Below, piece by piece: positions 1 through 20,999 of a stretch of 64,000 nt of DNA. The DNA is from Entomortierella parvispora E1425 (Eukaryota > Fungi > Mortierellomycota). The notes beneath the pieces are model-generated. The model made no database searches. It was given only the letters and a program-made list of their open reading frames with translations, and had not been told where the DNA came from. Location: the NCBI GenBank assembly GCA_020891255.1, contig BQFW01000001.1, positions 2,108,001-2,172,000 on the forward strand, given 5' to 3'. Position numbers and translations under genes: made by a program. Each line of letters opens with the position of its first letter. Within the stretch, counting starts at the first letter, position 1.

Positions 1-560
1 TACGCGACAGGCTTTGACGCAAAGTCTATAGAAGCGCGGGGAAAAAAAGTTAGGTGGATGGAAGAAAACACGATAGCAGTGCTGTTTAAGCAATTGAGCA
101 TGGCCTTCTGTGCTTACCAGCAGAGCTCTCGCACTTGCAGAACTTGCACTTCATCACCAAGTTGGCCTCGCCACGTCCAGATCCCATCTCGGCCTTGTCC
201 TGTAGTTTTTATCCACAGGGAGGTTGAAAGGAAAGAAACTCTTATTTTAGTCCGTGCAGGAGTAGTGGTCCTATAAACTCGACATTCGAAAGTACTTACA
301 ATAGCATTGAAGGTGATATGGTTTGAGTCGATCTCACGGCACTTTGTGCACTGAATCTTGAAGTGCCATGTGTGGTCAGCATCCTCAGGGATCAACTCGG
401 TAATGTTCTCGAGCTCAGCTTTGATTTGGAGGGCAAGGACAGGCTATGACAAAGAAATAGATGTTTGGTAACACGAATGATTATCACCAAGTGAAAGGTC
501 AGTCGCGCATTTGATGATTCTTATGTCCTCTCCATTGTGTCATTGCGAAGACGGTACCAT
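1..560 (-). CDS. CZIB: CXXC-motif zinc-binding protein (DUF866/C1orf123 family), 3'-partial. Exons 560-558, 443-300, 199-118, 25-<1
   Basis: Spliced translation M-PVLALQIKAELENITELIPEDADHTWHFKIQCTKCREID...DKAEMGSGRGEANLVMKCKFCKCESSA-DFASKPVAY. It has the two CxxC motifs and GRGEANLVMKC of the family. GT-AG junctions stay in frame. Confidence 0.92.
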
Positions 561-662
561 TGTGGATTATGATGTTCTGATGTGGACGTGAGATGGATGA
601 GGGCGATCAACCATCCAAAAGTTTAATATTTTATTAGGCTAACTCGAAATATTTGTTTTTAT

Positions 663-2854
663 TCAAGATTTTTTAACAAAGAATCTGGAGATCGATCCTT
701 CTTCAACCTCTTTCCTTGCTTTTTTAGAGCCACCACTCGACTCGGCAGTCGTTTTCCGTTTGGCAGCCTTGCTTGAATCCAAAAGACCACTATCCTTGCC
801 CTTTCTATATTTTTCAAGCAATTGATACGCTTTAAGGATTCCTGTAGGGATTGCAGCAGTGGCCAGCTCCTCCGCAGATAGCCACACTGTTTCTGGCGCC
901 CCTTTCTTTGGCTTTGCTTCTTTATCTCCTTTAGCGGAAGAGTCTTGATTCTTGACCAGGACCCATTCTGCATGGTATACTTTCCGAATATGAGAAAACA
1001 AATGCTGAGCATTTCCCAAATCACGGCGCTCAATGTCTTTGTTATCCCGGAGCCAGTCCAGGCCAAGGACATCTATCATGTACTTCAAACTGGAGGATGA
1101 CCGCTGCTTGTACGTAGATGGCCCGTCCAGTGAGTGATCAGCTTGAAGTTGCTCTAACTCTACAGTCGGGAACTCCCACATTCCTGCCAACAGTCCTTTT
1201 GCTGGTCTCTTTACAAGAAGAAACTCGGAATTCAGCGTTCCGTCGGCTTTCTCGCTAATAACACGCTCCAGAATCGCCACAGCGCACTCTATCAAATGAA
1301 AGGTTGTAAGAACGTTAGATTACCTCTAGCTCATTGTGGTTTTTTAAACCTCCACGAACGGTTTTTACCTTCGTCCCTCGGCGCCTTCTTGGCGGCCTTT
1401 CGTGGGTATTGCGTTACGAGGCCCTGCTCCTTTGCGTCGACTTCTGACTCTGCTAAGCACAATGTGCAACGCGAGTCATCATATTCGCTTTCAATTTCTT
1501 CCTTCAGAGTAACATTCTCTTGGCTTCTACTCCTGTCAATGACCTATTTTAACAAACAAAACATAATTTTAATACGTATCGTATAATGAAGAGCATTTTC
1601 TCTCGCAAAATAATTACCTCCGCATACGCTCTGCAGCTGGTCTGCACAGGACAGTCGTTGCACTTTGGGTTCTGCGGGGTGCAGATCGTGGCCCCAAGTT
1701 CCATTAGAGCCTGGTTAAAACATCCCGGCCGCTCCTGATGAACCAATTCTTTTGCAACCAGCCTGCGAGGAGATCAGAAATGGATAGGATCGTTAGAATA
1801 AGGAGCGGGCACGATAGATAGATCAAAAAGTGAGCTATGATGTGCTTACCAATGAAGATCAATAACTTTGGGACTCTTCACATCACCACCAATTGCCCGC
1901 AGACGAGACAAAACTCGGATTACATTCCCGTCAACCAATTCCGCTGGGACGTTGTACGCATGAGAAACAATTGCGCCGGCAGTATACCGCCCCACACCTG
2001 GAACCTCTTTTTCAAGAATAGCGGGGTCACTACAAAAACAGTGATATTTCTGTCAGAGTCATGGCATGAAGTTTCTCAAAACAATGGTGGAGTCTATGTC
2101 ACCAAATGTTCAGTTACCTGGGCAGCACTCCTCCAAACATCTGGACGACTTTCTGAGCACCAGTGTGTAGCCGACTTGCTCTGGAGTAGTAGCCTAGTCC
2201 TGTCCAGACCTTGTTGACATCCTCGATATCGGCCGCTGCTAGATCATTGATCGTGGGCCACTTTGACATCCATGTATTGTAGTAGGGAATAACGGTCGCA
2301 ACTTGAGTTTGCTGGCACATGATCTCTGACACCCAGACCTCATAGGCGCGCTGTCCAGCAGCCTTCCCAGAGATGGCGGAAGGATCATGAAAGTCTACGC
2401 GCCAAGGCAACTTTCGATGATTGACATCGTACCATGCGACGAGACTATCGCGAACTCTCTGACGAGATTCTTCTGATACAAAGCGGTGATAACTTCTGGG
2501 ATGACCACCAGAGATCCGCGCGCGGGCAGCATCCACGACCAGATCCTCGAGATCCGGCAAATCTTTAGTATCGATGTTGACGGTGCCATTGCCGCTTGCT
2601 GCAGGAGAGGACTTTGCTGAGGAGGTGGGCGCTGTTCGCTTACCACGAGCAACTGCAGCTTTAGGTTGAGGCTTTGAGGCCATTAACCGACTAAAAGCGC
2701 TTTCGCTGTTTAGTCCTAGTTTGTTCTCCTTTGAGTCGTCGTCGCTATCCTGACCAGTGCTGTCCTGAGCCTCGCTCTTGATAGCCAAGGCCGCTTTGGC
2801 GGCAGCCCGCCTCGATGGCCGTGCGACCGAGGGTGTGTCGGTGGAGAGATTCAT
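663..2854 (-). CDS. MUTYH: A/G-specific adenine DNA glycosylase MutY, 620 aa. Exons 2854-2118, 2029-1850, 1762-1618, 1543-1369, 1288-663
   Basis: [32 protein letters not shown], Hh[21 protein letters not shown], 4Fe-4S motif [18 protein letters not shown]-terminal NUDIX-like [18 protein letters not shown]. Exon sum 1863 nt is in frame. Confidence 0.96.
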
Positions 2855-3121
2855 GAGTCGCGGGTCCGAAGTAAATGAAAGAAAGAAGGAATGCTTCCTT
2901 TTCCCGAGGTTATTCTTTGCAGCAGCACAGGGCGTGGCTTTTTTCTCATTCTTTTTTTTTTACTCTTGTTGCATCAAACACCGCTCAAGACAGGTCCATG
3001 TGCCATTCAGTCTCTTCATTCTTCCTGTGTCCTTGAGCCATCTCTCCTCTGTCCATTGCATTGTCCCCCTCTTCCGTCCACTATTCTTTGCTCTCTGTAC
3101 ATCACCACATTACTGCATTCC

Positions 3122-5207
3122 ATGCTTCACAAAACAAGGCGGTCCTGGCGGCCTAGTGCTGTCCTTGCACTTGCCCTGTGCTCGTTCCTGTCGCTGGATT
3201 CCTTCACTCACCAGGCTCTAGCCCAATCCGCCTCACCTACTCCTACCTCATTGCCTGTTACCTCCTCGCCTGCTTCCTCTTCACCACCCCAACCCTCACC
3301 AATACCCATTCCACCACCAATTCCTCCAGTCCCCTATGTGCCTCTGCCTGCAGGAACGCGCGAGCTCCAGGATAGTCAGGTCGTTGAGGACACCGTCGCA
3401 ATTGGACAACTACAAACCTATCACTTCTCGATTGCGCAACAACAACAGAGTCTTCCTGTTCGCAGACAACTGGAGCGGATCCTCTTCCATCCAGGTATCC
3501 AGCAGGGAAGTCTGTTTGACAAGAGACAGGTAGTAGTAACACCCTCTGGAACGGTGGTACAAACAACTACTATTAGCGCAAGTACAACCACACAGGCCCC
3601 GGTCCCAACAAGGACCATCGTCCCAACGCTGCCTCCACCCTTCAGCAACGGCACCTATGCAGTCTTTATCTCGATCTCGACCTGCCAGAGTCCAAAGTCG
3701 GCCTCCAATGCTATCTGCCCTCCTTTGACGCTCTATGTCTCCACGTCGGACAGTCAACCCTTGCCTGGCCCTGGACAAGATCCAAAGGTCGTTCAGACGG
3801 TCACAAGTGTGGAGGGCTTGGTTCAGTTTACGGCGTATACTTCAAAGGATGTGTTTTTCAGCTTGCAGGGACCGGCCTTGAACAGTACATGGTCTGGAGA
3901 CTGGGCTGTGGAAGTGGGCGCATCTAGCCAAGGTAAAAAACCCAGGGCTGAAGCTCGATCTGGACGTAAACAAAACGGTCAGGGTGCTGAAGCAAATCTT
4001 TATTGCGCTTGCTGACAGCCACTCAAATCTCTCGGAATATATAGGCTATGTTCAAGGATACCAGACCAAGCAGGGCCTTATTCTCGATGATACTGATAGT
4101 TTAAGCGCCAGCTTTTTGACAGCAAACTTCACGGCCGTTCCGCCTTTCAGTGTGTACCTTATCAACTCGACTGCTTTACCGCAAGGATTGACGCGATCAG
4201 TCTGTGCCGTGGAGGCTGTGCAGCCCTTGCCCCTGACAAAGACGTCAATGACCATCACTCAAACCAACCGAACCAGCAATCTGGATGGATCTATGGGCAC
4301 CGAAATTATCCCCGCGGAGCCTACATTTGAGGAGTTTGGGCAGCGTCGCCAGGTCTTTTTGCAAGGACTGAACCCAGGAACCAACTACACCGCATTCTTT
4401 GTCACGGATGTTCTGAACCAAGCAGGAGCTGAAGCCATGTATTCCTTGACGACTTTCAAAACCAAGATACACGACAACTGCATGCTGATCACAGACCTCG
4501 AATTCTGTTATGAGGTTGCCTATGCTGTCCCCATAACTCCGCTCTCAACATTGCAAGCGTCAGGAACTTCTGGTAGCACCAACGGAACGATCCGCACCGA
4601 TGTCAGCAACTTTTATGATGACTTTACCAGCAATTTGATGGACAATTTCAAGCGCGTCCTTGGCCAGTACGACTGCACAAAGTCTCAATACTCTCTGATC
4701 AGGAATTGCACAGACTGCGAGAGGTCCTACCGTCGATGGCTTTGCGCTGTGAGCATTCCCAGGTGTACTGATGTTGAAGATATTACAAGCCCTAACAATG
4801 TGGGATACCAGCCACCCGCCATACCCGACCCCGATATGGTCGAGAACCCTTACCTGATCGATCGTTCTCATGGCGCCGTCGTTGTTGAGCGCAATACCAC
4901 AACATCAAGGGGGGCCATTGCCCAATTGAGACAGAATCCATTGATGAACCCTGGTGACTATGGCGAAGTCTTGCCTTGCATCGATCTTTGCTTTGATGTT
5001 GTTCAAAGTTGTCCTAATTTCTTGGGCTTCAACTGTCCAGTCAAGAACATGGTCGGCAACTATGCCCACATGAACTCATATGGATTCCAATGCAACGGAC
5101 TTGGCGTCGTACCCGTGCCGTCCAGTGCTCCTTCAGCCGTGAGCGGAAAGCTATCCAGCATACTTCTCTCCCTGTTTGTCACCGCGACATTAACCCTCAT
5201 TTTCTAG
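3122..5207 (+). CDS. MID1: Mid1-family regulatory subunit of the Cch1 calcium channel, 657 aa. Exons 3122-3932, 4045-5207
   Basis: N-terminal signal peptide (AVLALALCSFLSL...ALAQ). Cys-rich C-terminal region (FCYEVAYAVP, NCTDCERSYRRWLCAVSIPRC, YGEVLPCIDLCFDVVQSCP..GFNCP) is characteristic of Mid1. Phase-1 intron with GCTGAC branch. Confidence 0.93.
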
Positions 5208-5449
5208 AGCTTTTTAGCCAATACATACATTCCTACTTTGCATACAAGCTTTAACTTTCCACAGCAGATAACTATGATGAAAATGCTGAATGTATTTAAA
5301 GAAAACGACGAGTTTTGCGACTGTTTGTGGGGGTGGGTTGGGAAAAAAAATACAAAATAGAAGGAATGATATGATGAAGAGGTGCTTTCGACCGGGGAAT
5401 CTAATGTACGCTGCAATTTGTGGTTGGGTGTTGTTGTGTGTTCTTTGGC

Positions 5450-6289
5450 TTATTCCTCATCCTCATCCTCCTCTTCCTCCTCCTCTTCCTCGACATCGGC
5501 ACCCTTGACAAAGTGCTCACCGAAATCATAAGGAGCATCCTCGACCTCGGCCTCTTCCTCTGCGGCCTCCTGAGCCTGCTGCTTCTTTGTCTTCTTTTCC
5601 GTTGCAGTCTTTGCCTTCTTTGATGATCCAGAGGCAACAGCGGCAGCAGCGGCCTTGCGCTTCGAGGCCTTTGACAAGGCGTTTCCTTCAACAACAACCT
5701 CCTCCTTCTTCTTGGGCTGCTTCTTCTCGGGTGCAGTTCCGTTGGCGATAGCCTCGGCCATAGCCTTGGCTCTGGCCTCCTTGCGGACCTTCTCCTGTGC
5801 CTTACGACGCAACTCCTTTGCCTTGTCCTTTTCCTCCTGAGCCTTCAATTTGGCATCGGCAATCTGTTGCAAAAGCTGCTCCTTGAAGGGATAGTTGTTG
5901 GGAATACCAGGGTCCTTCTTGTTCTCTATGAAAAATGGAATTGTGATAGGCAAGGCAGGGTCAGCATGAGGGTTGGGGTTGAGTTGAGTCCATAATCCCG
6001 AGTAGGGTGAACATTTGAAAACACAAGACGTTACTGTGGTGTCCGTTGGGGTTGCCCTTGGCCTCCTTGCGAAGCTTGCGGTGATGGTCCTTGACACGCT
6101 TCTCAATCTTGTATCTGTGGTTAGCGGGGATCCTCTTTGAGGTGATCTCTGCAGACAAGGGAAAGTGAAGCAAGACAGTCAGTCAGCTGGCGTTTCCTCA
6201 CACTCTCGACTAGGGAGATATGGAGAAGCAGCAAAAGCAGCAAAAAGTAGCATGCATGCAGGCTTACTTTTACGGGGCATTCCAGGCAT
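5450..6289 (-). CDS. GNL3L/Grn1 (Nug1/nucleostemin) N-terminal-domain protein lacking the GTPase domain, 203 aa. Exons 6289-6268, 6148-6035, 5925-5450
   Basis: Spliced [38 protein letters not shown]...[20 protein letters not shown] matches the GN3L_Grn1 N-terminal motif. It is followed only by a K/A-rich coil and an acidic tail ending at TAA 5452-5450. Confidence 0.85.
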
Positions 6290-6969
6290 GGTGATGTGAT
6301 TGTGTGTTGGAGGAAAAGAGAGGGGAGAAGGGAAGGGTGAAAGCGATGAGGGGGTGATGGATGGATGGCCAAGAATGAAATGCAGACTGAGGACAAGGCA
6401 CTTTTTTTTTTTTTTCTTTTTTTTTTGTTGCTTGTGTGTCAACACAAGGAGAAATCAGTGACTGCTGCTACCGTGCACGTGATTTTCATTTCCGGGAGGG
6501 CGGTCAATTTTCTGGTTTGAGCTCCGCTCTGTGACAGACTGAGAGAGTGAGAGTGAGAGGTGGAAGACATGCATTCCAAGGAACAGCTGACAAGGAGTGA
6601 GATGCCATTTGTGAGTGCATGCAGCGAGAGCAACGTGTGAAGAGAAAGGGGTCAACAAAGAAAAACAACAACAACTGCAGAGAAGGGCTGCAGCCAAACC
6701 ACTCCCCTCACTTGAACTGCATCTCTTCTTCTCCTCGTCTCGACCCTCTTTGTGCATCCATCCATCCGACCCCTGGGAACACCCTGCTGGCACACCCAAG
6801 GAGAGAGAGCGACCCCCAATCCTTTTTACTGTATACATATTATTATTCTGACCACTCCCTTCTCCTCCTTCTCCATTCCCATCTCCCTTCAGACACTCAC
6901 CCAACAAACAATCAGTCATCCCCATCAGGACGAGAGGAACAACAGACAACGGTCGTTCCCTTCCTTGGC

Positions 6970-8750
6970 ATGATTTCCCCCGCCAGTCTGCCCTCGCCTG
7001 CTGGCTACTCCTTCGGCTCCCATGGACCCATGACCCAGCTCGAGGATGAGCATCCAGACCAGAGCTCTCCTTCCTTGACTGCCACTACCTCCACATCCTC
7101 TTCAGTCTCCCTGTCCGCCCTGGCAAACCAACTGCACCAACGGAACAGTATTCGCCTGTCACTCTCGAACGACACCTCGGCGTTGGCCTCCTCGCCTATT
7201 GTCTCCCCAACCTCCTCTTCTGGAAACACAGGCAGCCTCAACAACGGCACCACCGGCACCAACGCCTCAGCCGCAACCCCCTCGACCACCTTTCAGAAAT
7301 CAGCCCCAGCCTCGTTGTCCGTGGCCCTGTGCCGGTCCTTGGTACTCAAGTACATCTACCTCACTTACCTCTTTCTGGTCCAACTCTTGACCTATCCCTC
7401 GGCTGCCTTCCAAAAGTTTATCCGTCAACGCAGGCTTTTTGGCGGCAACGGTAGCGGTCGTATTCATCACCACTCGAGCCTCAAGGGCGATTCATCCTCG
7501 ACCCATGCAAGCGCTGCCGGATCAGGGATTGAACAGCTGGACACCATTAATAACAGCAGCAGTATCGATGGCGCAACAATAGCATCAACCACCGCAGGTG
7601 CGGGCGAAGCCGTGGTCATCGGCGCAGTCGCGGAAAAGTTTTTACAGCAGTATACCCTGGACAACCACCTTAGCCAGTACAACAACAACAATAACAATAA
7701 CAATAGCTGCAGCGACAACAACAACAGGAACAATACCAACGAACAGAGCAACAGCGGGTCCTCAGTGCTTCGTCGATCTTCGAGGTTCAAATCTCGCTCG
7801 GATCTGGAAGAGATTGCCCAGGCCTCCACCCCAACACGCTCCTCATCCTCGGCTTTAACATCCTCCTCCTCAATACGGAATAGCCAGGGCCGATCGGCCG
7901 CAGGTTATGGAACTGACTCTATGGCAGAGGACGGCTCGGGAGATAACTCGACAACGCGCGGGAACAACGTTCGTTTGCGTCAAAGGATGGGACGACCCAT
8001 GTCCGGACTAGGTGCCCCTGGATCGCAGGGCCATGGTGGCATGGGAGCGAGAAAGAAGACGCTAGTCTTGGATTTGGACGAGACTTTGATTCATTCGACT
8101 TCTAGAGGATCGCGCTCTCAAGGCTATATGGTCGAGGTCTTGGTGGATCGCCACGCTTGTCTTTACTACGTTTACAAACGGCCCCATGTCGATTACTTTC
8201 TGAAAAAGGTGCGTATCCCTTCTACTCACCCTGCAGGTACATTTGATCCCAGTTTTGTTTTAAAGTAACCTAACCCGCCCCGTACAATTTTGCATTCCCG
8301 GCTTTAGGTTGCCGAATGGTACAAACTCGTCATCTTTACGGCATCCATGGCAGAATACGCCGACCCTGTGATCGACTGGCTGGATCAGAACAAGACACTG
8401 TTTGACAAACGATACTTTCGACAAGCTTGCTTCCTTCGCAATGGAAGTTACCTCAAGGACTTGACCGTCATTGACCCTGACCTGTCCTCGGTCTGTCTGC
8501 TGGATAATTCGCCCATCTCCTATTCTTTAAACAAAGGTGAGGATAATTTGACAACCCCTGGATCCACTTGCCTAGAAGAGGAGGCACTGTTCTGACTTTT
8601 TATTACCTTTTGGACGTAGAAAACGGCATTCCTATTGACAGTTGGATCGATGACCCCAATGACGAGGCTCTATTAGACCTTTTACCATTCTTGGACGCGC
8701 TGCGGTTTACTGAGGACGTGCGATCGGTGCTGTCTCTTCGAACAGTTTAG
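6970..8750 (+). CDS. NEM1: Nem1/CTDNEP1 (Dullard)-type HAD/NIF protein phosphatase, 532 aa. Exons 6970-8208, 8308-8536, 8620-8750
   Basis: [15 protein letters not shown] catalytic motif, [79 protein letters not shown]. An N-terminal hydrophobic segment ([17 protein letters not shown]) favours Nem1 over Psr1/Scp. Confidence 0.88.
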
Positions 8751-8970
8751 AATCGATGAGCCAGCTTTTAAATGATAAAAAGACTCACATTGAAACTTTA
8801 CTACCCACGTGGTCGTGTACCTTGAACGTATTTCATTTATTGCAAACAGCTAGAAGATGAACTGAACTATGAAAATAATGGAGGCCTGCCATCATGTAGA
8901 TCACTTGGGGCGTAGCGGCCCAAGACACATGCATCGTATTGAATGTTTAATCGCGACTGGCACTACATCC

Positions 8971-9790
8971 TCAACGATTGACACCGCGTCCTCTATGGCC
9001 TCGAGGACCACGTTCGGGGCTGCGGGAGTCGGACCGTTGACGATCAAGTCGCAGTACACGATCATTTTCATTTCGGTAACGGCTCTCGAGAATGTGAGAG
9101 CGCGATCGTCTACGGTCCCAGGTTCTTTGTGTCTTACCGTTCCTCGCGTCGACACGACGGCTGGGGCTGCGCGAACGGGTGCGCGAGCGGCAACGGTAGC
9201 GCTCCTGTCGTCTATCATGATACGAATCCAAGTACCATCTGCTATGGTAAGAACTCAGGTATCGCCCAAGGTGATTGCGTTCACGAGATGGGTGATAGTG
9301 GTTGTGTTCACGAAATCTCACAAATTTTCGATACTTGTCCCAGTCCAAGTCGCGAGATGGATCCATCTAATTGTTCAGAGGAAGAATGGCAAGTTAGTTC
9401 AAACCAGTCGTCAAGTCTTTAAAAATAACAGCTGAGATACAAGCAAGTTGAAAATGAAAATGATACATGTCGGACGATTAACGCCTTGCCCCGCAAGGTC
9501 TCGCCACTCAAAGTCCTAACAGCCAAATGGGCGTCAATGGCAGTAGCGTAGTCAGCCATTCTGACCCAAAGCAATAGAAAAGGGGGAAGAAACGCGTTAG
9601 ATGATTGCGGTTATAGGGTTTTAGGATGAGATTGTACTTGTACGATGGATACTTACCCTTGGCCGTCACCGTTGACATCTGCACGGAGAACCCCGCCGGC
9701 CCTACTCATGAAGTCCTTGAGGTCCTTATGAAAACACAATTTAATTGTAGAATTAGTTACCAGTTCGAGGGAGAGACAGAGAGAGACTCG

Positions 9791-9854
<64 letters not shown>

Positions 9855-10613
9855 TGTTGAGCTGTGATGCAGGGTACATGGTTCAAACAGGACCAAAAGA
9901 GAAGCATTTTTAGTCCCAGTAACTCCAGCACATAGTACGTGGGTGGACGCGTAAATATATCCAGAGCAAGTAGAATCCCCCAAGAGAAGGAGAGGGACCA
10001 AGTTTGAGCAATCTCCTTAACAACAGCACACAGAATTCAGGGGTTTGATCCCTTACCTGCCACGATACGTCAAAGTCCAGGTTTTCAACCATAACGCGAA
10101 AGTGCTTCTCGGACTCTGCAGATCTACTTTGCCAATCAACTTTAGTTAGAATCAAAAAAAGACAAGTTCGTGCATCTCCAGCATGTTCTTGCATACTGGT
10201 TGAATTCCCTTGCTTACCCTCTGCTTCCTTGATGCTCTCGACCCCACTCGACGATCAACCTTGTGTGATAGATGGAGAGGAAAAGAAACAGTTTAGACAA
10301 CAAAATAAAATTGGTGGCGAAACCAACAAACAAACAATGTTGAAACTTTGTGGTCGTGATTGCTTGCATGAAGAAATGTATGAAACGCGAACGAACGAAT
10401 GAATGTAAATGAATGGTCATACCTGTCACCCAAGAATTTCAGTCCATTCAGCTCACGAATGGCCCTTCGAGCGTTTTTTTCACTGGAGAGTTCGATGAAG
10501 CCATAGTTTCTCTTAAGTCTGATATCGCGTGGACCTCCATAGGGCTTGAAGAGAGATTCGATGTCCTCTCTGACCACATCGTACCGAAGGTTTCCCAAGA
10601 AAAGACGTGACAT
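8971..10613 (-). CDS. SR-family splicing factor with two RRMs and an RS/RD tail (SRSF4/5/6 or Srp2-like), 285 aa. Exons 10613-10423, 10259-10218, 10123-10057, 9724-9657, 9560-9467, 9366-8971
   Basis: RRM1 SRLFLGNL...RNYGFIEL...RAIRELNG. The pseudo-RRM signature SWQDLKD is reconstituted across the 10057/9724 junction. C-terminal RSRTRSRSPSRR. Exon sum 858 nt is in frame. Confidence 0.88.
9771..9850. repeat. (GA)n/(TC)n microsatellite inside intron 3 of the SR gene
   Basis: Nearly pure GA dinucleotide run from 9771 to 9850. Confidence 0.98.
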
Positions 10614-11032
10614 TTCAAGATGTTCTTTGCGCTAGTTAGACCTGGGGGTGGGGGGTTCTTGTAAGTGCAAGTGTAGGAGTTGGGGAAGAAGTTAGTAAGC
10701 TGAAGAAGAAGAACGGCAGAAGTGAGAAGGAGAAATCTCTTTCATTGAATTCCTTTTATTCTTTTTTTTTTTTTTTTTTTTTCTTTTTTGTAGGGGGGAA
10801 GGGTGGCAAAAACAAGGGCATCCTTTTTGGGTTGACGTTGACGGTGGACGTTGTTGACTGTTGACATTGACGCGTAAAGACGAGATTTTTTTGTTCCTTT
10901 CAATTTTTTTTATTCTTGTGGCTGAAGAAAAAACATGGGAATGGGCACTACCAAGAACTGCAATGTGCGGAGGGCAATGAAGGGAGAACTCAAGTCACTA
11001 AAGCTTTGAGATCGGGGCAAAGGACTCTACAC

Positions 11033-12229
11033 CTAGGCGCAGGCATTTCCCTGGACCTGCTGATCCTGTTGACCCTGGCAAGATGAGAAGGATGCACTTC
11101 CCTGACCCTGGTAAGAAGGGAAGGAAGCATCCTGCTGCCCCTGGTAGGAAGGAGAGGAAGCATACTGCCCCTGGGAGGAAGAGAAGGAGCCGTACGAGGC
11201 AGAGGAAGAAGAGGGAGTGCCAGACATGTAGGTAACATCAGACTGGTCGCAAGGTTCTGTGTTGATAATGAATGGCAGAGACTGAATCGAGGGCTGGAAG
11301 GTGGTCAAAGGCGTAACCTGGACATTGGGGGTGATCTGCACCTGAGATCCAAGCTGGACGCTGGACTGAGGAAGAGACTGGTCCTGGCTGTCTGCAGCTT
11401 GAATGGAAGTCGCCAACTGATTGACCGTGGGCTGGTAAGTGGTCTGGGGCAAGACTTGGGTGACTGGCTGAATGGCAACGTTCGATCCCAGGTTGACATT
11501 CTGCTGTGGAAGAGAGTTCGACTGGGCAGCACTCGCCTGGATGTCAGCACTCAAGGACTGGACCTGAGGCTGGTACGTTGTCGCGGGGAACACTTGATTG
11601 CTGGGCTGGGCAATGACCTGCGAACCCATGTCAACGCTCTGGGGTGGGACAGAGGTGTTGCAGCCTTCCTCGCCTTCATTGCAGTTCGAAGACTGGAACT
11701 GGCTGAAGAGCAAGTTGCCAGAGTTTCCAGAGTTTCCAGAGCTTCCAGAGTTGTCAGAGTTGTAAGAGCTGTCCGAGCTGTCCGAGCTGTCTTGTTGGTG
11801 GCGCTTGTAGAGACCACCGCGAAGACCGGCGAAGCGTGATCCAAAGCCAGAGGAGGAAGGGTAAAGAACATTGTTCAGACCATAACCGGAACCATAGCCG
11901 GAACCGTAGATGGAGCTGCCACCGTAGCCACCGTACAATCCATAGTTGGAGCCATAACCACTTCCGAGGCCCGAATAGCCGTTGGAAAGGTCGTTCGACA
12001 GATCATCAGAGTCGCACTCGGACTGGACGATTGGGGAGAAGGCCTGGACGTAAGGCTGATAACGGGTAATGGGCGTGACATTGGTCACTGGTGCAATGTT
12101 GGTTGTTGAACCCAAGTTCACATTGCCAGAGCTGGCAGACTGACTGCAAGCATCACCTTCGCAGCGAGCGACCAAAGGGGCGGCCTGGATTGAAGCAATC
12201 AGGGCGATGACAACGGCGATCTTGTACAT
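11033..12229 (-). CDS. Secreted Gln/Ser/Val/Pro-rich repeat protein of unknown function, 398 aa, single exon
   Basis: Signal peptide MYKIAVVIALIASIQA. Four copies of a ~46-aa unit VxLGSxVxIxPxxxVxPxTxYQPxVxxL. Internal LYKR dibasic site. Short DNA tandem repeats encoding SGN/SSD runs and SYQGQ units. Confidence 0.9.
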   Translation of the reverse strand: MYKIAVVIALIASIQAAPLVARCEGDACSQSASSGNVNLGSTTNIAPVTNVTPITRYQPYVQAFSPIVQSECDSDDLSNDLSNGYSGLGSGYGSNYGLYGGYGGSSIYGSGYGSGYGLNNVLYPSSSGFGSRFAGLRGGLYKRHQQDSSDSSDSSYNSDNSGSSGNSGNSGNLLFSQFQSSNCNEGEEGCNTSVPPQSVDMGSQVIAQPSNQVFPATTYQPQVQSLSADIQASAAQSNSLPQQNVNLGSNVAIQPVTQVLPQTTYQPTVNQLATSIQAADSQDQSLPQSSVQLGSQVQITPNVQVTPLTTFQPSIQSLPFIINTEPCDQSDVTYMSGTPSSSSASYGSFSSSQGQYASSPSYQGQQDASFPSYQGQGSASFSSCQGQQDQQVQGNACA

Positions 12230-12354
12230 GGTGAACGAAGGTGGTTTTGAAAGTATCTCTTTGGGTATGAAGATGTTGCTGCTAGCGCTGCTGTTGTTGT
12301 AGGAGGTTGTTTTGGTCGTTGGATCGATGAGGATTTGGATCCTACAAGGGCCCT

Positions 12355-12361
12355 TTTTATA
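12355..12361 (-). promoter_or_regulatory. TATA box of the secreted repeat-protein gene
   Basis: TATAAAA(AGGG) on the minus strand about 125 nt upstream of ATG 12229. Confidence 0.6.
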
Positions 12362-14431
12362 AGAGTGGTTGTTTGCTCGTCCTCATGCACTTTTCCAGCT
12401 GAAGAATGGCCGTCAACTCTGGAGCTCTACACCGTCCACACTGCAATCAGAGGAGCCATATATTCCCCCGAATGCAGCGCTGAAGAAGAAGCCGGAGGAA
12501 GAACTCGCCTAATGATGCATCGATGTCGATCTATCGATGATCAGCTCCGAGCGCGATAACTGGTGCCAGAGGACCTGTCCATCGTCGAAGGCAAGGGAGC
12601 GACGCGTCCTGTGTCAAAACGAGGAGAAAGAGAGGACTGCGTGTTTTCGAGGAAGGGTGGCTGTGGACAACGCGTCCGTCAGGAGGACGGACTGTGCCGT
12701 CTGTGGAGATTCAAAGTGGCCTCTGCTCTGTGCTCTGACAAAGGCACTCTCTCATCGCACGGAAAGGAACAGCCAGAGACGCCCATCCCCCTTCCCTCTC
12801 GCCATCCCTTTGTCCTGTCTATGCTCCTCAGTGTTCATTCATTCCCGCGCGTCTCCATCTCTGTTCATCGTGATTGATTAGATAAAGGTAAGGAGCGCCG
12901 ATCTCTCTCTCTCTTTTTTTTTTGTTTCTCCTGTTTGATCAAGACGGCTCATCCGACCACACGGGATCTGATCAGTCCAGAACGCGGGTCTTGCTGCTGT
13001 TATATCTGTTTTTATGGCGAACGTTACTGGGGATGTGTTCTCCCCTTCCCCATACCCTGCCCCTTGGTGTGAAGACCATGGTCATGATGAACGATCATTG
13101 CTGACACGCAGACTATCCGACCATTGGTGGGGCAGCAATCGATGTAGTCTTCTGCTCTGTCCATTAATGGGTGTTTCTGTAACAGTGTGGTTGTCAGCTA
13201 TCAAAATGCTTCAGCCGATACCTTGAAGAGAGAAGTGGAGAGAGAGAGGGAGTAGAGGCAACAGCAGCACGCACACACACGCAGCGAAAGGCGCACCCTG
13301 GGGCTGGTGAACGCTTGCCCTTTGAGCTCGATCATAACCATCGCTCAGCGCGGTAGAAGAGCGTGGAAATATGAAGAAACAGAGAGCGAGAGCGTGCACC
13401 ACGGGGGGAGCACCAGCGTGAACGGATGCAGACAGAGACCACCATTGACCAGAAGGAGGGTAGAGCAATGGCACTGTCTGCGGCAGTGACAAACAGCAGT
13501 GGCGATGGACCCTGTGGCCCCATTGGCCCCACTGGCACCCACTCGTGGCCAACAACCGACGATGGCAGGGTGGCTAGCCCCGTAGGTGTCGTGGCACCGA
13601 CAAAAGACTGACAAAGACAGACAGGCAGACAGACCAGCAAGCAGTCAGTCAGTCAGTCAGTCCGTCAGTCTGTCGGCCGCTCTGTCTGTCCGTCGGTCAT
13701 TCAGTCCATCCCTGAACCCTCTCCACTCCTCTGTCTGCATCTGTTTGCCCAAATCTCCTTTGCGTCAACGACGAGATCGATCCCGCTCCTTGCATTTGAT
13801 CCTCTCCCGCCAAGCACGATCATCATTGCTTCCTCTTCCTTCCCTGCTGGCCTTCTCCCGATAAGTCCTGTCGATCCCCCACTCACTCGCTGATATTTGT
13901 CCCCCCACTCCCCTCGCGCAGCGTTCAACTCCAATCCAAGCCTTGCTCCTTGCCAAGCATCCCCAGGTGTTCAAGGAACCGCATCAAGATCCACGCTCTG
14001 GTGGTTGCCGTGGTTTGCCTCTCTGGGATCCATCGCTCAACATCGACAGATTCAAGATATCTGGTCTGCTTCCCAGTGCCGCCTCCATTCAGTGCATTTT
14101 TTTTATTATTTCGTCCGAGAAAACAAAACGCACCTTTTCCTTTCTCTTTCTTCTTCCCCCCTTCACTCTTTCTCTATTGTCCCCCGTGTCTCCTTCTCTG
14201 TCAGCACTCTGCTCTTCATCGTTACATCTACCGGATAGCACCACATAACCCCCCTCTTCATCAAAGATTCCGAGCTCAACATCGGACCGCTCCTTGGAGA
14301 CAACAAGGCATAGTCGTCGTCCTTTCGACAAGACCCGTGGTCAGCCTCATACAAGCCCCTCCCCAGTGTCATTACCCGAAAGGGAACCTACTTATAAACT
14401 GTCTGAGGTTCATGAAAGAGGCGCCGCGGTC

Positions 14432-17400
14432 ATGCCGCCGGTGGCCCCACCACGAGGAAGCCAGTTGGCCATCATCCAAGCCATTAATGATCGCAGAAGA
14501 GCAGAACGGTCGCAAATGATGATGTCGAAAGGCTCCGCAGGAAACACTCAGCCTTCGCCAGCTGCCGGATGGGTCAATGGACGTCCAACGTTCGGATCGA
14601 AAGGACCATTGACAATTTCACCCAGCTTTGCCGGTGGTATGCGACAGGCGATAGCGAATGGCTTGGGTGGTGAGTATCAGGATGATTGTGTTTGGCCTCG
14701 TACACTGACTGACGGATGATCTCTCCATTTTTCTTCTGTTCCCCCAGCTACTACAACCGCAATAGCCACATCATCACCGCCTTCAACAGGAACACCATCT
14801 GGGAAGGCAATATCGCCTGGGCTGGTGCATCCTCACACCAGTGAACAACTCCCTACACCTCACCGCAGCGGCGACATCACAGGGCTCAAGATTAGGATTC
14901 CCAGAGATCTCCCCAATTTGCCTGATGCCTTCCGGAGGCGTGGCGCCATTCGTTCTCAGCCAACTTCTTTGCCTCTGTCCGCTTCGCCATCGTCAATCTT
15001 GACACCATACCCTCCGGTGAAGGCTACGGCTTTGCCATATGCCAGCCCAGGCACAATTAAGAGGACATACAGCACAATGTTGCTGGAAGATCACCAATTG
15101 GACCTTGGCAATCATCCCTTGCGTGGTAAATAGAAAAGAGTGCTGCAGCAGAATACGTGAGTTGGGAGCATGTTTTGGAGGCGCAACGGCACTGACGTCT
15201 TTGGATCTCCCTATTTGTGTCCATAGATTCTGCGCAGGATAACGACAAGCGCCAAAAGGTTGCCAGTATCCCAAGTTCATTAATGCCTCTGCCACCTCAG
15301 TTGGCCAATGCAAAGAATCTCGCAATTCGCACGGCCCGCCTGCCTCCTAATGCTACCCCCAGGAGCAACCCCCTCTCAAACCTGATTTCTAGTCATTCAT
15401 CATCCAAGGTTCATTCCAGCGTCCAACGCCACCGAAGCAACTCTAGTTCAAAGTCGGCCTCTCCTAACGGAACCCCAGTCCGGATTGCCTCGCCCAGTAT
15501 TGCCCCAGACACAACTGTGGTGGTACCACCATTGCAGCAACTTTCTGCAACGGAGCAGAAGGCGACCCCATTGGCAACAGCTTCACATTCTCACGGTACG
15601 AGATCAAATGAAGGCGCGGTCCAGACGACTTCCAGTCCAGCGGATGCGGACGAAGTGATGTCTTCTGCGGTTTCTGCGAGCACAGTGGCCACCGACCAGG
15701 ATCTCCAAGGCTTGAAACCGATCGAGTTGGTTCGAGTAGGAATGAACATTCTCGACTCGCTCGTTTGCAACACATTTTGCAAGGGCTTTATCAATCCAGT
15801 TCCATCCTCAGTATCCAACTACTACGTGGTCATTAAGAAGCCAATGGACTTGACGACGATCGAAAGGAAACTTTGGAAGTCGCTGGAACTGGCTGGCGGC
15901 AGTGGCTCTGGACATTCAATAGCAGATGACGGATTGGAGGGATATACATGTTTGGAAGATCTGGAGAAGGATTTGAGAAGAATCTTTCAAAATGCCACCT
16001 ATTTCAACTCGCCCAGTCACCCCATCTATAAGGAGGCGCACTCCTATCAGAATCAGTATCTTGGGTTGCTCGCAAGCTATCGCCAAGGGTAAGTGGAGAT
16101 TTTTCTCTTGTTTTTTTTTTTGTTGAAAAATGACGGTCTTACAAACTATCCTTCACCTCCTGGTGCTCAATAGGCAAATGCAGTTGAACGCCCCTATTCC
16201 ACACGAGTCGTTCAGACCAGAGATGATCTCTTTGTCTGAGCCTGGGTAAGGAGATACAGAAATACGAAAATAACGAAAACAACTTTGCAGAATCTGGGGC
16301 AATTATTTACTAATGTTTTATTTTAATGTTTTGCTTTCCCCGCGACATTAGTCCCCTTTACCTGTTCCGTGCTCATACCCTTCGTGAAATGGAGCGCAAG
16401 ATGACAGACATTTCGACCGACCTGTTTTCAACTCTGCACCAACCCCTATTTGATGCGTCTTTCGAATTTGATGAAATCTCACCAGAGAAGCCTCGGTTTG
16501 TGAGAATGTACATCAACAAGAACCGCAGTGTGTTAGCCAAGTGTCGCGATGAACAATTCGCTAGAGTGGCTATCCTTACAGACCTCCAGATCGGAAAGTC
16601 TTATACAGCTTCGACTCAGTCCGAGTCCTCCCCAGGAGCACCAAAATCTGGAAAGGACAACGGCGCTGCATCCATTAGCATGGTGAATGTGTCCTGTCGA
16701 GTCTTGATCGGAAAGCCGATTGGTGAACGACATGACATGGTCACAGTTGGCGATCTGGACTGCCCGAACGCGTGGGTTACGGTGGCATGTGTCAAAGCGA
16801 TGGAGCTGGATGTAGAAGTACCCACCAAGTTTGAGAAGGGAACCTTGTCCAAGATGAGACACGAGCTGGTGCCGTATGCTTTGGATACAAAGATCAGTCC
16901 TGAGCACCAACGCGCGTTTGCAGATGCTCTTGGATTGCTGTTGCCGACCTCCACCCGAGCTGGTCAGGTGCATGGCTTCATAGGACAGCGGTCTGCAATT
17001 CCTATGCCTCCTCCGGCTGCTCCCGTTGCCTCAACTCCCAAGCCTAGCAGCCCCAAAGGTCTGGGAATATCCACACCCTCAAGCATGCCCTCAGCCGAAC
17101 CTTCACCTGCATCCGTCAAGTCAGATTCAAGCGAGGCAAAGGATGCAAAAGATACAAAACAGCCTTTGCTGACGGTTCACGATCAAGGAACCAAAGGACG
17201 GCTATTAGTCACGATCAGATCCTCATCTCGGAAGGCCAAAAACGCTCTCACTCATGTCTATGCAGCTTCGACACCCGCTACACCACTCCTCTCTGGAATG
17301 GCACATACCCTCTCCAGTCAAGTTCCATCTACTCCAAGTGAGGGCGAGTCTCTGTCGGCGCCGGATCGTCTGTTGCTAAACGAGCAGATCACGAAGCGAG

Positions 17401-18549
17401 GCAACAAGATGCTTGGGGACTTGAAGGTTGTGGCGCGTCAGAAAGGGGTTCCTTATACACTTTGGGATGACATCGAACCCACACTCACTGTGGATTCAGC
17501 TCATGGACTGTTCAAGCGAATCTTCCATGTCAAAGGCGACGAGGGAGTGGTGGTCCAGAATTTCAAGGAGATGGATGCCGAGTCCTTTGAGCAGCGAGTC
17601 CGGGAGGTCGCTTGTCTTTTGGAGCTGAAAGGTCTTGAGGGAGTAGGTCAGATTCAGTCCGTCATTGACAATGATGAGAAGCATCTTGTTGGACTTTCAA
17701 TGACCAAGTAAGTCCCATCCACTTTTGACGTTTTTGCTCTGCGTGATGTTGATTACCAGAGATATTAACAACTACCCAAATTCCAATTTATCATCTTCAT
17801 CTTTTAGATACAGCTACACCTTGAAACAGTACGCCACCAATGCAAGAAAACATCCGACCCCATGTCAAAAGCTCAGTCTTATCCAAGACATGGTCTCGGC
17901 CATGTGCGATATCCACGAGGCAGGATTGGCCCATCGAGATCTAAGCGAGGTCAATATCATGGTGGATGAAGATCCCAAGGAACGACTTGACGACAATTCA
18001 CCTCGCCCACACGTCAAGGTGATTGACTTTGGCAAATCTGTGTTTGTTCGCCGGCGTGAAGTGGAGCGCTGGAGCATGCAGGAGAAGGTCTCGGATGAAG
18101 AGCTTGCGCTCTTGCCGTTGGTTGTGCTTCCACCGGACCATGGCTACAAGTTGTACCGATCCATCCTGACATTGCCCAAGACCAAGCAGGATCATACCCC
18201 ATTGCCTCCTGTGGACCCTCGATCCGAGGACGTTTACTCACTCGGGGTGTTGATCTGGAGGACATTCAGTGGCAAGTCGCCCTGGAACGGCGCAATTGAA
18301 GATGATCTGAAGACGATCCGATACCTGGTCGCCTCGGACTCACAGATCCGTTTCCAGCTCGAACGTGAAGTGACAGGTCCAATGTCGCGGGCGTTACTTC
18401 TGCGCTGCTTGACAGCCCAGGCAGAGACGCGATCGACTGCAAAGCAATTGAAGGAATGGCTGGCCCAACCGCAGATTAGCTCGGAGCTCTTGAAAGAGTT
18501 TGAGGCTTTGGGCGGAGGTCGCAAGAAGGTTCGCAAGAACTTGGATTAG
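14432..18549 (+). CDS. Bromodomain + unknown domain + atypical protein kinase fusion, 1215 aa. Exons 14432-14669, 14748-15125, 15227-16088, 16174-16245, 16352-17707, 17808-18549
   Basis: Bromodomain GFINPVPSSVSNYYVVIKKPMDLTTIERKL...DLRRIFQNATYFNSPSHPIY. Kinase motifs HRDLSEVNIMV, KVIDFG, EDVYSLGVLIW. Five GT-AG introns give a continuous 3648-nt frame. The start codon is the first in-frame ATG; an extra upstream exon cannot be excluded. Confidence 0.9.
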
Positions 18550-18905
18550 AGGAGACCCTCACGAATGCGAATGACCAACGCCCACCCCCGTTGCCACCTC
18601 AGCAACATCAACTAGTACCCACACCACTTTAGTACCCGATTCTCAGTTCCTTTTTTTTTCCTTTTTTTTCAGTTCATTTTTTTTTTTTTCAACCTGTTGT
18701 TCTCATCATTACTTGTTTTTATATTCCGTTCCCCCCATCTCATATACACATCCATCGATAATAAATCCAGATAGCATGAGACAGAGGTCTTGATGCAAAA
18801 GAGATATTTATTTTCTAGTGGTATTGTACAATGAGGGCATTGAAAAAGGTATGCAGATGGCAAGAAAGAAAGCAAGCGAACGGGTAATATTGAGGTGTAC
18901 GAGAT

Positions 18906-20138
18906 TTAGCACAAAGAGGCGGTCGTCGCCAAGGCCACCACCAACAGCGGGACGATCCAGTTCACGGCCTCCAAGTGGGTCAAGGGAGTGGAAGCTGCAG
19001 AAGTCAAGCCCGAGTTCCGGCTGGTGGCGTCCTTGTCATTGAGATCGGTGGAGGTCTTGCCATTGTCCATGTGGTTATCGTCGTTCACGCTGGGGGGAGG
19101 GCGGGCCAAATGAGAGACAAAGATGGCCTTGGCAGGGTTGGGCTTTCCGCCAGGGGTGGCCTTCAACCCCTTGATACGGAACTGACGATCCTGAACCAGG
19201 ACCACATTGTGGGTGGCAGGGACAGCAGCAGCAGCAGCAGCAGCCACCTTCTTTTTGGCTGGCGCTTGTGCAAGAGAAGACTCAACTTCGTTGTTGCTTT
19301 CAAGCACGAAATCGTTGGGCGTGGACGCGTCCGCATCGGATCTCTTTTCTTTTTCTTGCCCTTTGCCTCCCTGGACGTTCTTGACGGCGACGGTCTTCAT
19401 AGTGGCCTGTGTAGAGCTCGTTTTCAAGACCACTCTGAACTTGTCTGAAAAGTCAAACTCGGACGCCAGCGTCTTTGGGATGGTCCAGCTCTTCCACAAG
19501 AAGGGTTCCTTCTTGGCGGCCAGATCCTGGGGGACAGGAGTTCCCTCAGGGACCAAAACTGCCAACCTGACCTTTCCATACTCGTCCATCAGTTCCAAAG
19601 ATGCCGTCTTGGGGGCGTTACCTGACCCTAGAGCACTCAGCATCCAAAAGTCAATCTTGGACTCTCCCGCAATATAGGTAGGGCGGTAATTGATATAGTA
19701 AAAGTCGAGGTTATTGTCTGGGTATATGCCCTGGGTGATCACCATGTTGTTCTCGGCCGTGATGGTGATGGTCATGGGGGGAGCACAAGCGGAACCAGGG
19801 ATGGCACGCGTGGGCAAATAGGCCAACTTTTGGTCATCCCCGATCTGACCTTCCAATTGCAGCTGGAGAGGAAGAGGGGAACGATCAGAGAAGGTGATAG
19901 CCATGGCATTGACCAACTTATTGGGCGCTGAAGTGTGCTTGGGCATCCTTCTCGGGGCAGCTTCAACCCCTAGATGGGTGGGGGCGGTGGTCGAGACCAA
20001 AAGGACAACGAAGGTTAGAGCAAGGATGAAATAGGGCGAAGAGGAGGTACGCAATCGTCTAGGGGTCGTAGCGGAAGTGGTGGAGCGCGAGACAGCCTGG
20101 GCTGAGGATCCGATGCCTATGACGGAGGAAAAGGGCAT
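18906..20138 (-). CDS. Uncharacterised cell-surface protein (signal/anchor, beta-rich domain, probable GPI signal), about 410 aa. Alternative start at 20198
   Basis: Long ORF with hydrophobic YFILALTFVVLLVST near the N-terminus and C-terminal small residues plus a hydrophobic tail (SGLTSAASTP...WIVPLLVVALATTASLC). No family recognised. Confidence 0.75.
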   Translation of the reverse strand: MPFSSVIGIGSSAQAVSRSTTSATTPRRLRTSSSPYFILALTFVVLLVSTTAPTHLGVEAAPRRMPKHTSAPNKLVNAMAITFSDRSPLPLQLQLEGQIGDDQKLAYLPTRAIPGSACAPPMTITITAENNMVITQGIYPDNNLDFYYINYRPTYIAGESKIDFWMLSALGSGNAPKTASLELMDEYGKVRLAVLVPEGTPVPQDLAAKKEPFLWKSWTIPKTLASEFDFSDKFRVVLKTSSTQATMKTVAVKNVQGGKGQEKEKRSDADASTPNDFVLESNNEVESSLAQAPAKKKVAAAAAAAVPATHNVVLVQDRQFRIKGLKATPGGKPNPAKAIFVSHLARPPPSVNDDNHMDNGKTSTDLNDKDATSRNSGLTSAASTPLTHLEAVNWIVPLLVVALATTASLC

Positions 20139-20999
20139 TCTGATGGCCTTGTGGAATGAAGACCTGATGAATGACTGGGTGTATGGGTGCTTGTTCATGA
20201 TGCTAATGCTAATGCTGATGATGCTGATACTGAGAAATTCAAGGTGCTGTATGCTAAAAATGATTGAGTGCAAGGGCGAGTTGCTGGCAAAAACTGACAA
20301 TAAGGGGGGACAACTCGGACGTTTAAATACTTTCTTGGACGCGTTCGTACTCTTTACAACCTGCCCTCCTTTTCCCTGTGAAGATGATCGCTACCATCCC
20401 CATTCGCTCCTTACCGGTCGGTTACGTCCGAAATTTCTATCTAGTCGAGTAAACCACCATCCAATTAACCCGATGGTTGTCCGTCCCATTGGGCCAATGT
20501 TGTTTATCCATTCCATATTCCCATTCAACGAAATTGATCAGCTTTTTTTGTTTTTTTTTTGTTTTGTTTGTGCTGTGTCCGACTTAGTAATCCTGGCGTA
20601 AGAGCATTGATCGCCACCATTACGCATGGCTGCCGCTCAATTGCAGATTGTACCCCTCATCATCGGCCCAGATTTCAATCGCAACTGAGAAAATCATCAA
20701 GGATCACTCCCCCAATGACGCGTTTCCTCTCCGTGCTGTGTGATCTACATTTGTGTAACATCATGCTGACGCGTCCTTCGTCCAGACGACGACTCCACCC
20801 TATCTTTGCCAGGAGGCCGTTGCATTCGGTCCTTAAAACAAGTTCGTTCTTTTGCTCTCTTTTATTTTTTGCTTAAAAAATGTGGCTTCCATAATATTAG
20901 TTGTACAATACAAAAGCAGGAGGAAGGAAAAACAGACTTTTGTCCTCTAAAGACCTTGGTAATCTCTATTTGATTATCGGCAACAAGGAGCAACATCAA

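Follow-up and report, generated by a model that had tools for sequence, protein, structure and literature searches.

A conserved fungal bromodomain-kinase fusion with a putatively relocated active-site lysine

The stretch of DNA analysed here (the window) comprises 64,000 nucleotides from Entomortierella parvispora E1425, a Mortierellomycotina soil fungus (contig BQFW01000001.1, positions 2,108,001 to 2,172,000). At positions 14432 to 18549 of its plus strand lies the gene of EMPS_00608, which encodes a predicted protein of 1215 residues joining a bromodomain, a conserved middle domain, and a kinase domain. The kinase is a divergent eukaryotic protein kinase (ePK) domain forming an orphan ePK family, and the fusion of bromodomain and kinase is real and conserved. 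The kinase carries a glutamine, Gln919, in the place of the lysine of strand β3, and a lysine, Lys905, in the glycine-rich loop, an arrangement reminiscent of the WNK kinases. We are slightly inclined to read the protein as an active kinase that uses Lys905.

In this proposal, glutamine has replaced the β3 lysine that normally reaches the ATP phosphates, and the lysine with which β2 begins, at the third position in the Gly-rich loop, would take over phosphate binding together with the link to the αC glutamate or the DFG aspartate. The catalytic-loop lysine (HRDxK) has likewise given way to a serine, and the lysine at DFG+1 may replace it. The bromodomain would bring the protein to acetylated chromatin, and the basic C-terminal tail would bring it to the nucleus. 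The aligned sequences favour activity in that the residues of Mg-ATP binding and transfer, other than the two lysines, are essentially invariant over a very deep divergence.

Active-site arrangement of the kinase domain

The kinase domain scores 59.8 bits for the Pfam family PF00069, whose cut-off is 31.7, when residues 845-1204 of the public E. parvispora record (P0054) are searched, and the Pfam search with exon 6 alone recovers the kinase C-lobe. The AlphaFold2 model, built with 79 family sequences, has a predicted local distance difference test (pLDDT) score of 91 and a predicted template modelling score (pTM) of 0.90. In domain numbering, where residue 1 is residue 845 of P0054, its secondary structure places β1 at 40-46, β2 at 50-55, β3 at 58-66, and helix αC at 71-87. 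The VIA superposition of the model on FGFR, EGFR, and RET covers about 270 residues and reaches Z scores of 25-26, and the best kinase matches are generic, including, besides these three, CK2, DAPK, STK33, and Dictyostelium tyrosine kinase-like proteins.

The features of the kinase module are listed below with their conservation. The counts refer to 130 aligned N-lobes and about 119 C-lobes, except where the 79-sequence kinase-domain alignment, which has a mean column identity of 56%, is named; domain numbering is given in parentheses.

17367 to 18546, plus strand: kinase module, residues 856-1215, comprising a helical extension at the N-terminus, the bilobal ePK fold, and the basic tail; intron 5 lies at 17708-17807
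17505 to 17516, plus strand: remnant of the Gly-rich loop, G902-L-F-K905, with Lys905 at the third-Gly position and the start of β2; Gly902 (G47) 130/130, Phe904 (F49) 129/130, Lys905 (K50) 130/130
17550 to 17567, plus strand: β3, V917-V-Q919-N-F-K922, with Gln919 encoded by CAG at 17556-17558; Val917 (V62) 129/130, Gln919 (Q64) 126/130 and never Lys or Arg; just past β3, residue 922 (K67) is Lys in 97 and Arg in 33
17595 to 17606, plus strand: αC residues Arg932 and Glu935, in the helix at 71-87 of the model; Arg932 (R77) 130/130, Glu935 (E80) 130/130
17932 to 17955, plus strand: catalytic loop HRDLSEVN, with Asp1013 and Asn1018 retained and Ser1015 instead of the usual Lys; Asp1013 (D158) 118/119, Ser1015 (S160, at 17944-17946) 118/120, Asn1018 (N163) 119/120
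18025 to 18036, plus strand: DFGK, Asp1042 (D187) 117/118, followed by the near-invariant DFG+1 residue Lys1045 (K190, at 18034-18036) 117/119
18133 to 18162, plus strand: PDHGYKLYRS block at the APE site, reading GYKLYRSIL in context; P-D-H-G-Y (1078-1082) in 79/79 of the 79-sequence alignment
18508 to 18546, plus strand: basic C-terminal tail LGGGRKKVRKNLD, resembling a nuclear localization signal, conserved in Mortierellaceae and basic in distant members too

The Gly-loop stretch reads SAHGLFKRIFHV, with Lys905 encoded by AAG at 17514-17516, and the β3 context is VVVQNFKE. Among the basic residues of the N-lobe, the loop lysine is the most constrained one, even where a member is only 29% identical. 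The four exceptions to the β3 glutamine are a serine in Entomophthora and in Massospora, an alanine in P0129, and a leucine in a fragment; P0129, itself 29% identical, keeps the loop lysine and has neither Lys nor Arg on β3. The one loop glycine that stays invariant throughout the family is the equivalent of PKA Gly52, described as the most critical loop glycine in PKA (PMC4718504).

Further into the domain, the few exceptions at the DFG aspartate and the DFG+1 lysine are probably alignment artefacts. In the 79-sequence alignment, DFG is found in 76 and DYG in three members (Tyr at F188), and the positions equivalent to the regulatory and catalytic spines, I52, V62, L84, H156, F188, and D255, are conserved, being hydrophobic or polar as expected. 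The subdomain XI arginine, Arg1177 (R322), is present in 117/117. The invariant serine of HRDLS and the near-invariant lysine at DFG+1, taken together, suggest a second, compensating relocation of a lysine. The HRDLSEVN loop resembles a RIO-type loop. An insertion of about 20 residues follows the PDHGYKLYRS block, before helix αF, and the two conserved tyrosines of the block could be phospho-acceptors. The predicted protein ends in the C-terminal tail GGGRKKVRKNLD.

These results confirm the observations of a sequence-only reading of the same DNA and support its interpretation in part. It had described a kinase with HRDLSEVN, DFG, the αC glutamate (Glu935), and a basic tail, all of which are where it placed them, and it had pointed to a β3 glutamine, a lysine in the Gly-rich loop, and the replacement of APE by GYKLYRSIL. 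Both codons were found at their positions, the glutamine on the canonical lysine column by the Pfam register and the 9av6 alignment described below and the lysine on the third position of the loop, and the APE replacement was confirmed. The comparison of homologues that it had proposed gives the loop lysine in all 130 and the β3 glutamine in 126 members.

The placement of Gln919 on the canonical β3 lysine column draws on three independent lines, namely on the Pfam register, on the alignment to a CK2-like structure, and on strand periodicity. The Pfam family Pkinase aligns domain residues 60-198 with profile positions 26-152, and PK_Tyr_Ser-Thr aligns domain residues 57-201 with profile positions 27-159. 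The VALK lysine of a canonical bacterial kinase (P0130) falls on Pkinase position 30; this protein served only for the Pfam numbering, and the profile of the 79-sequence alignment did not align its N-lobe. With residue 60 on position 26, the residues V61-V62-V63-Q64 therefore correspond to V-A-x-K, which puts Gln64 on the lysine column.

The N-lobe profile found a single kinase match in the PDB, a CK2-like Trichomonas kinase (PDB ID 9av6/9av7), which is also the top Foldseek match. In this alignment (E 0.053), G-l-F-K is set against G-K-Y-S of GRGKYS, with the lysine on the serine, i.e., at the third loop position; V-v-q is set against V-V-K, with Q64 on the lysine, and E80 against the αC glutamate. 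In the 79-sequence alignment, conserved and variable residues alternate on each strand: β2 keeps K50 and I52, β3 keeps V62, Q64, and F66, and R51, V61, and N65 vary, V61 being a lysine in seven sequences, so that the conserved residues lie on one face of the sheet. In PKA, V57/G55 and A70/K72/L74 are on one face, and in canonical kinases the third loop glycine and the β3 lysine are cross-strand neighbours. Judged from the alignments, Lys905 is on the third position of the loop and thereby on the position of WNK1 Lys233, since the WNK motif, which we take to be GRGSFK, places Lys233 there. A local alignment with TTK that begins at Gln64, with the register shifted by two, was rejected as an edge effect, the two Pfam models and 9av6 agreeing that the glutamine is on the lysine column.

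Several points weigh against an active kinase with Lys905 as its phosphate-binding residue. The loop retains just one of its three glycines, and the catalytic-loop lysine (now Ser) and the APE motif are gone. The Gly-loop block is the least confident stretch of the kinase model (pLDDT 73), the 9av6 alignment is marginal, and the crude DSSP hairpin (β2 50-55, β3 58-66) pairs K50 with V63 and not with Q64, which is ambiguous. The acetyl-lysine asparagine of the bromodomain also varies across the family, being His in 25 of 92 members. Finally, the pseudokinase domain of GCN2 shows by analogy that a β2 lysine alone is no proof of catalysis.

The best surviving alternative, which we regard as possible if doubtful, is that the domain is a pseudokinase, serving as a scaffold or conformational switch on a chromatin reader, with or without nucleotide, and that the β2 lysine is structural, for example, salt-bridged to the aspartate of DFG. 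This would fit the loss of the β3 lysine and of two loop glycines together with that of the catalytic-loop lysine and APE, as well as the behaviour of the N-lobe, which by itself matches no Pfam kinase family and, as a single sequence against the PDB, gives only chance matches to cytochrome c. One member (P0024) has HRN, and two of the 20 members that were aligned first have DYG. The pseudokinase domain of human GCN2 is a precedent for the same layout: it has Lys294 on β2 and Tyr311 on β3, the lysine pairs with the DFG-equivalent aspartate and is purely structural, and the domain is inactive (PMC12867742). However, the GCN2 domain has a degraded P-loop and DYS in place of DFG, and its β2 lysine varies among orthologues (PMC12867742), whereas the fungal family keeps the loop lysine in 130/130, an intact DFG motif, and the catalytic Asp, Asn, and Asp. 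The HRD aspartate, the catalytic asparagine, the DFG aspartate, and the αC glutamate are kept in 117-130 of 118-130 sequences, which would be unexpected had phosphotransfer been lost.

An active kinase in which another basic residue stands in for the β3 lysine (Lys922, Lys1045, or Arg932), leaving the loop lysine to bind a substrate or a regulator, seems improbable. Residue 922 is always basic, Lys1045 and Arg932 are invariant or nearly so, and the loop region has the lowest model confidence. Lys922 is nevertheless unlikely to be catalytic, because it lies past the end of β3 in the model, aligns to the post-β3 lysine of the CK2-like sequence VVKVLKPV in 9av6, and is Arg in 33 of 130 members, unlike a catalytic lysine; the downstream lysine of FKE, which the earlier reading had named as a possible β3 lysine, is this residue and makes a weak candidate. 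The DFG+1 position, for its part, is near the phospho-acceptor and not near the α and β phosphates.

Gene structure, transcripts, and distribution

The locus consists of long plus-strand open frames with short GT..AG gaps between them.

14432 to 18549, plus strand: whole coding region, six exons, 1215 residues, EMPS_00608 of Entomortierella parvispora
14453 to 14512, plus strand: conserved N-terminal motif RGSQxAIIxAINxRRRAERS, recognised by alignment with orthologues and an mRNA contig

Joining the exons 14432-14669, 14748-15125, 15227-16088, 16174-16245, 16352-17707, and 17808-18549 gives 3648 nucleotides or 1215 codons with one stop, at the end, and all gaps have GT..AG ends. The spliced protein of 1215 residues put forward by the sequence-only reading is thus a frame with a single stop, and it is 100% identical to the public record P0054 ('hypothetical protein EMPS_00608 [Entomortierella parvispora]', 1204 residues) apart from 11 residues, GMRQAIANGLG. 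This difference is explained by an alternative intron-1 donor, of which there are two candidates within 14636-14670; the EMPS_00608 annotation takes the upstream GT, at 14636/14637, and loses GMRQAIANGLG. A contig of a relative with about 90% identity, found as one contig in four runs of unspecified kind, follows exon 1 to 14665 and then continues directly with exon-2-like sequence, and therefore favours the downstream donor at 14669/14670.

Transcripts of a relative cover nearly the whole protein. Five runs (SRR6256850-55) supplied the Logan contigs L001-L005, which measure 4.2-4.7 kb; each has a single unbroken frame that aligns with residues 6-1215 of the predicted protein. Splicing in this relative was read by comparing the contigs with the genomic locus of Mortierella hygrophila, at about 90% nucleotide identity. 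The contigs are without genomic segments of 146, 91, 287, and 99 nucleotides, all with GT..AG ends, and the 287-nucleotide segment consists of two introns flanking an exon of about 70 nucleotides. The segments spliced out correspond to the five intron sites of the E. parvispora model, and with all five removed and a single frame maintained, one spliced mRNA of that relative carries both the bromodomain and the kinase. Separate transcripts for the two, which the earlier reading had considered, are therefore not what the mRNA contigs contain.

The idea of a gene-model artefact, i.e., of adjacent bromodomain and kinase genes joined by false introns, is close to refuted and deserves next to no credence. 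No RNA run of E. parvispora was found, and the runs aligned at the locus showed a single junction, that of exons 1 and 2, in the relative with about 90% identity. But exon 5 by itself holds both the middle domain and the N-lobe of the kinase within a single open frame, the collinear order of bromodomain, middle domain, and kinase recurs in over 100 gene models drawn from four subphyla, and the spliced contigs from five runs carry the whole protein in one frame.

The N-terminal third of the protein is Ser/Pro-rich and probably disordered. The frame is open upstream of the ATG at 14432 (14294-14512), and orthologues have an N-terminal extension (…NLTDIQQDG…) before the motif RGSQxAIIxAINxRRRAERS; the true translation start may, judging from these sequences, lie in an upstream exon.

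A HMMER search of 1.84 billion representatives with exon 5 as the query returned 33 proteins, and word-indexed searches from two members led to a set of about 130. The members belong to Mortierellomycotina, where several species have two or three paralogues, to Glomeromycotina (Paraglomus, Geosiphon, Ambispora, Gigaspora, Funneliformis, and Entrophospora), to Mucoromycotina (Umbelopsis, Rhizopus, Mucor, Phycomyces, and others), and to Entomophthoromycotina (Basidiobolus, Entomophthora, and Massospora). No member was found in Dikarya within the sensitivity of the HMMER and word-indexed searches. The database names are automatic, such as 'Receptor-interacting serine/threonine-protein kinase 1' or 'hypothetical protein', and in the literature searched for the family and the architecture we found no study and no characterised member, in agreement with the earlier statement that no characterised fungal protein has such an architecture. 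The proteins are already public as hypothetical; the novelty lies in recognising them as a family with this architecture and this arrangement of the active site.

Bromodomain, middle domain, and flanking sequence

The two domains that precede the kinase were located as follows.

15697 to 16088 (last codons in exon 4), plus strand: bromodomain, residues about 363-493, Pfam PF00439
15820 to 15822, plus strand: ZA-loop Tyr404, Tyr in 92/92 family bromodomains
16006 to 16008, plus strand: BC-loop Asn466, Asn in 67/92 and His in 25/92 of the family
16075 to 16979, across introns 3 and 4, plus strand: conserved middle domain of about 230 residues, residues 489-726, defined from alignment A2

The bromodomain match to PF00439 (E 2.4e-16) scores 59.9 bits, well above the cut-off of 21.7, and Tyr404 and Asn466 are both present. 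The asparagine that anchors acetyl-lysine is kept in all Mortierellomycotina members and is replaced by histidine in Mucoromycotina and some Glomeromycotina. Going by this Asn/His difference, the ligand of the bromodomain may differ between lineages.

The middle domain is strongly conserved, with an invariant Trp (domain position 170), Arg80, and Pro151, and its AlphaFold2 model has an α/β fold with a pLDDT of 85. None of the 54 members scanned gives a Pfam match in this region. In the wide (index-free) VIA search, 13 of the 14 top PDB matches are YTH, EVE, or EVE-like domains, with Z scores of at most 7.0, which is in the grey zone; rank 10 of these matches is the modification-dependent nuclease VcaM4I. 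The best Foldseek matches are THYN1 and YTH, which are weak, with an E of about 0.1 and template modelling scores of 0.3-0.4. The YTH/EVE (PUA-like) readers are thus the best and mutually consistent fold matches of the middle domain, although, unlike them, it has no sequence-family match. The model weakly resembles a PUA-like fold of the YTH/EVE/THYN1 sort, and we treat this as a lead. A BAH identity was rejected, since the sole pointer is that its ESM-Atlas features resemble those of Bromo+BAH clusters with a similarity of 0.71, and BAH appears neither in the Pfam scans nor among the top 50 fold matches.

Early-diverging fungi are reported to have abundant N6-methyladenine (6mA) in their DNA. 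The fold matches invite a more ambitious, and in our view long-shot, reading of the protein as a non-Dikarya chromatin kinase in which both phosphate-contacting lysines have moved, one to β2 and one to DFG+1, and which is aimed by the bromodomain together with a PUA-like reader of modified bases.

Two observations concern the 3' flank of the gene. At 18445-18551, short contigs of run X4 with a very high word depth, about 1,400, align with nothing but the final 100 or so coding nucleotides, at about 92% identity, before their sequences diverge; their source may be a highly expressed relative or paralogue that shares the C-terminal motif. The neighbouring open reading frame, at 18906-20300 on the minus strand, is convergent and encodes 464 residues that are Ser/Ala/Thr-rich and hydrophobic at both termini, a composition like that of a secreted or glycosylphosphatidylinositol-anchored wall protein.

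Comparison with known kinases and chromatin proteins

For the migration of a catalytic residue within the kinase fold, the WNK kinases are the textbook example. Both the WNKs and the fungal family lack the β3 lysine and have a lysine on β2 within G-x-F-K, and both keep the αC glutamate, the HRD aspartate, and the catalytic asparagine. In WNK1, the β2 lysine is Lys233, and the WNKs are active through this relocated residue (PMC4718504, PMC7586955, PMC12867742). They differ from the fungal family in having DLG in place of DFG (PMC12867742). The fungal proteins, in turn, have a near-constant glutamine on β3 where WNK1 has Cys250, Ala or Ser at the first loop glycine, DFG and not DLG, HRDLSEVN without the loop lysine, PDHGY for APE, and a fused bromodomain. 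Neither the best 60 PDB sequence matches, nor the best 50 fold matches of Foldseek and VIA, nor the best 30 Swiss-Prot fold matches include a WNK. With no affinity to WNK in either sequence or fold searches, the β2-lysine arrangement would therefore be independent, i.e., convergent, as the sequence-only reading had proposed.

If Lys905 does act in catalysis, the family would add an independent second case, conserved far more deeply, and would show the β2 position to be a general alternative solution. The inactive pseudokinase domain of GCN2, with its β2 lysine in place of the β3 lysine, would then offer a natural comparison for what else activity needs, and the always-Gln β3 position and the DFG+1 lysine are hypotheses on compensation.

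The CK2α-type kinases, represented by 9av6/9av7 (Trichomonas, CMGC group), share with the fungal family Val-Val-x for Val-Ala-x on β3 and a non-Gly third loop residue. CK2, in contrast, retains the β3 lysine, the catalytic-loop lysine, and a normal activation segment, and the identity is about 15%.

We know of no characterised protein in which a kinase of the ePK fold is fused to a bromodomain, and found none. Such a fusion, if active, would link histone acetylation directly to phosphorylation in Mucoromycota, which include the agents of mucormycosis, arbuscular mycorrhizal fungi, and the oil-producing Mortierella. An unusual active site in a family found only in these fungal lineages would also make it a possible selective target.

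TAF1, BRD4, and BAZ1B/WSTF are bromodomain proteins credited with kinase activity. To our knowledge, none of these three has an ePK-fold domain, whereas the fungal kinase has the bilobal ePK fold. BAZ1B has been named a tyrosine kinase (PMC9290241). What the fungal family shares with these proteins is the combination of an acetyl-lysine reader and a phosphotransferase activity, predicted only in the fungal case, in one chromatin protein.

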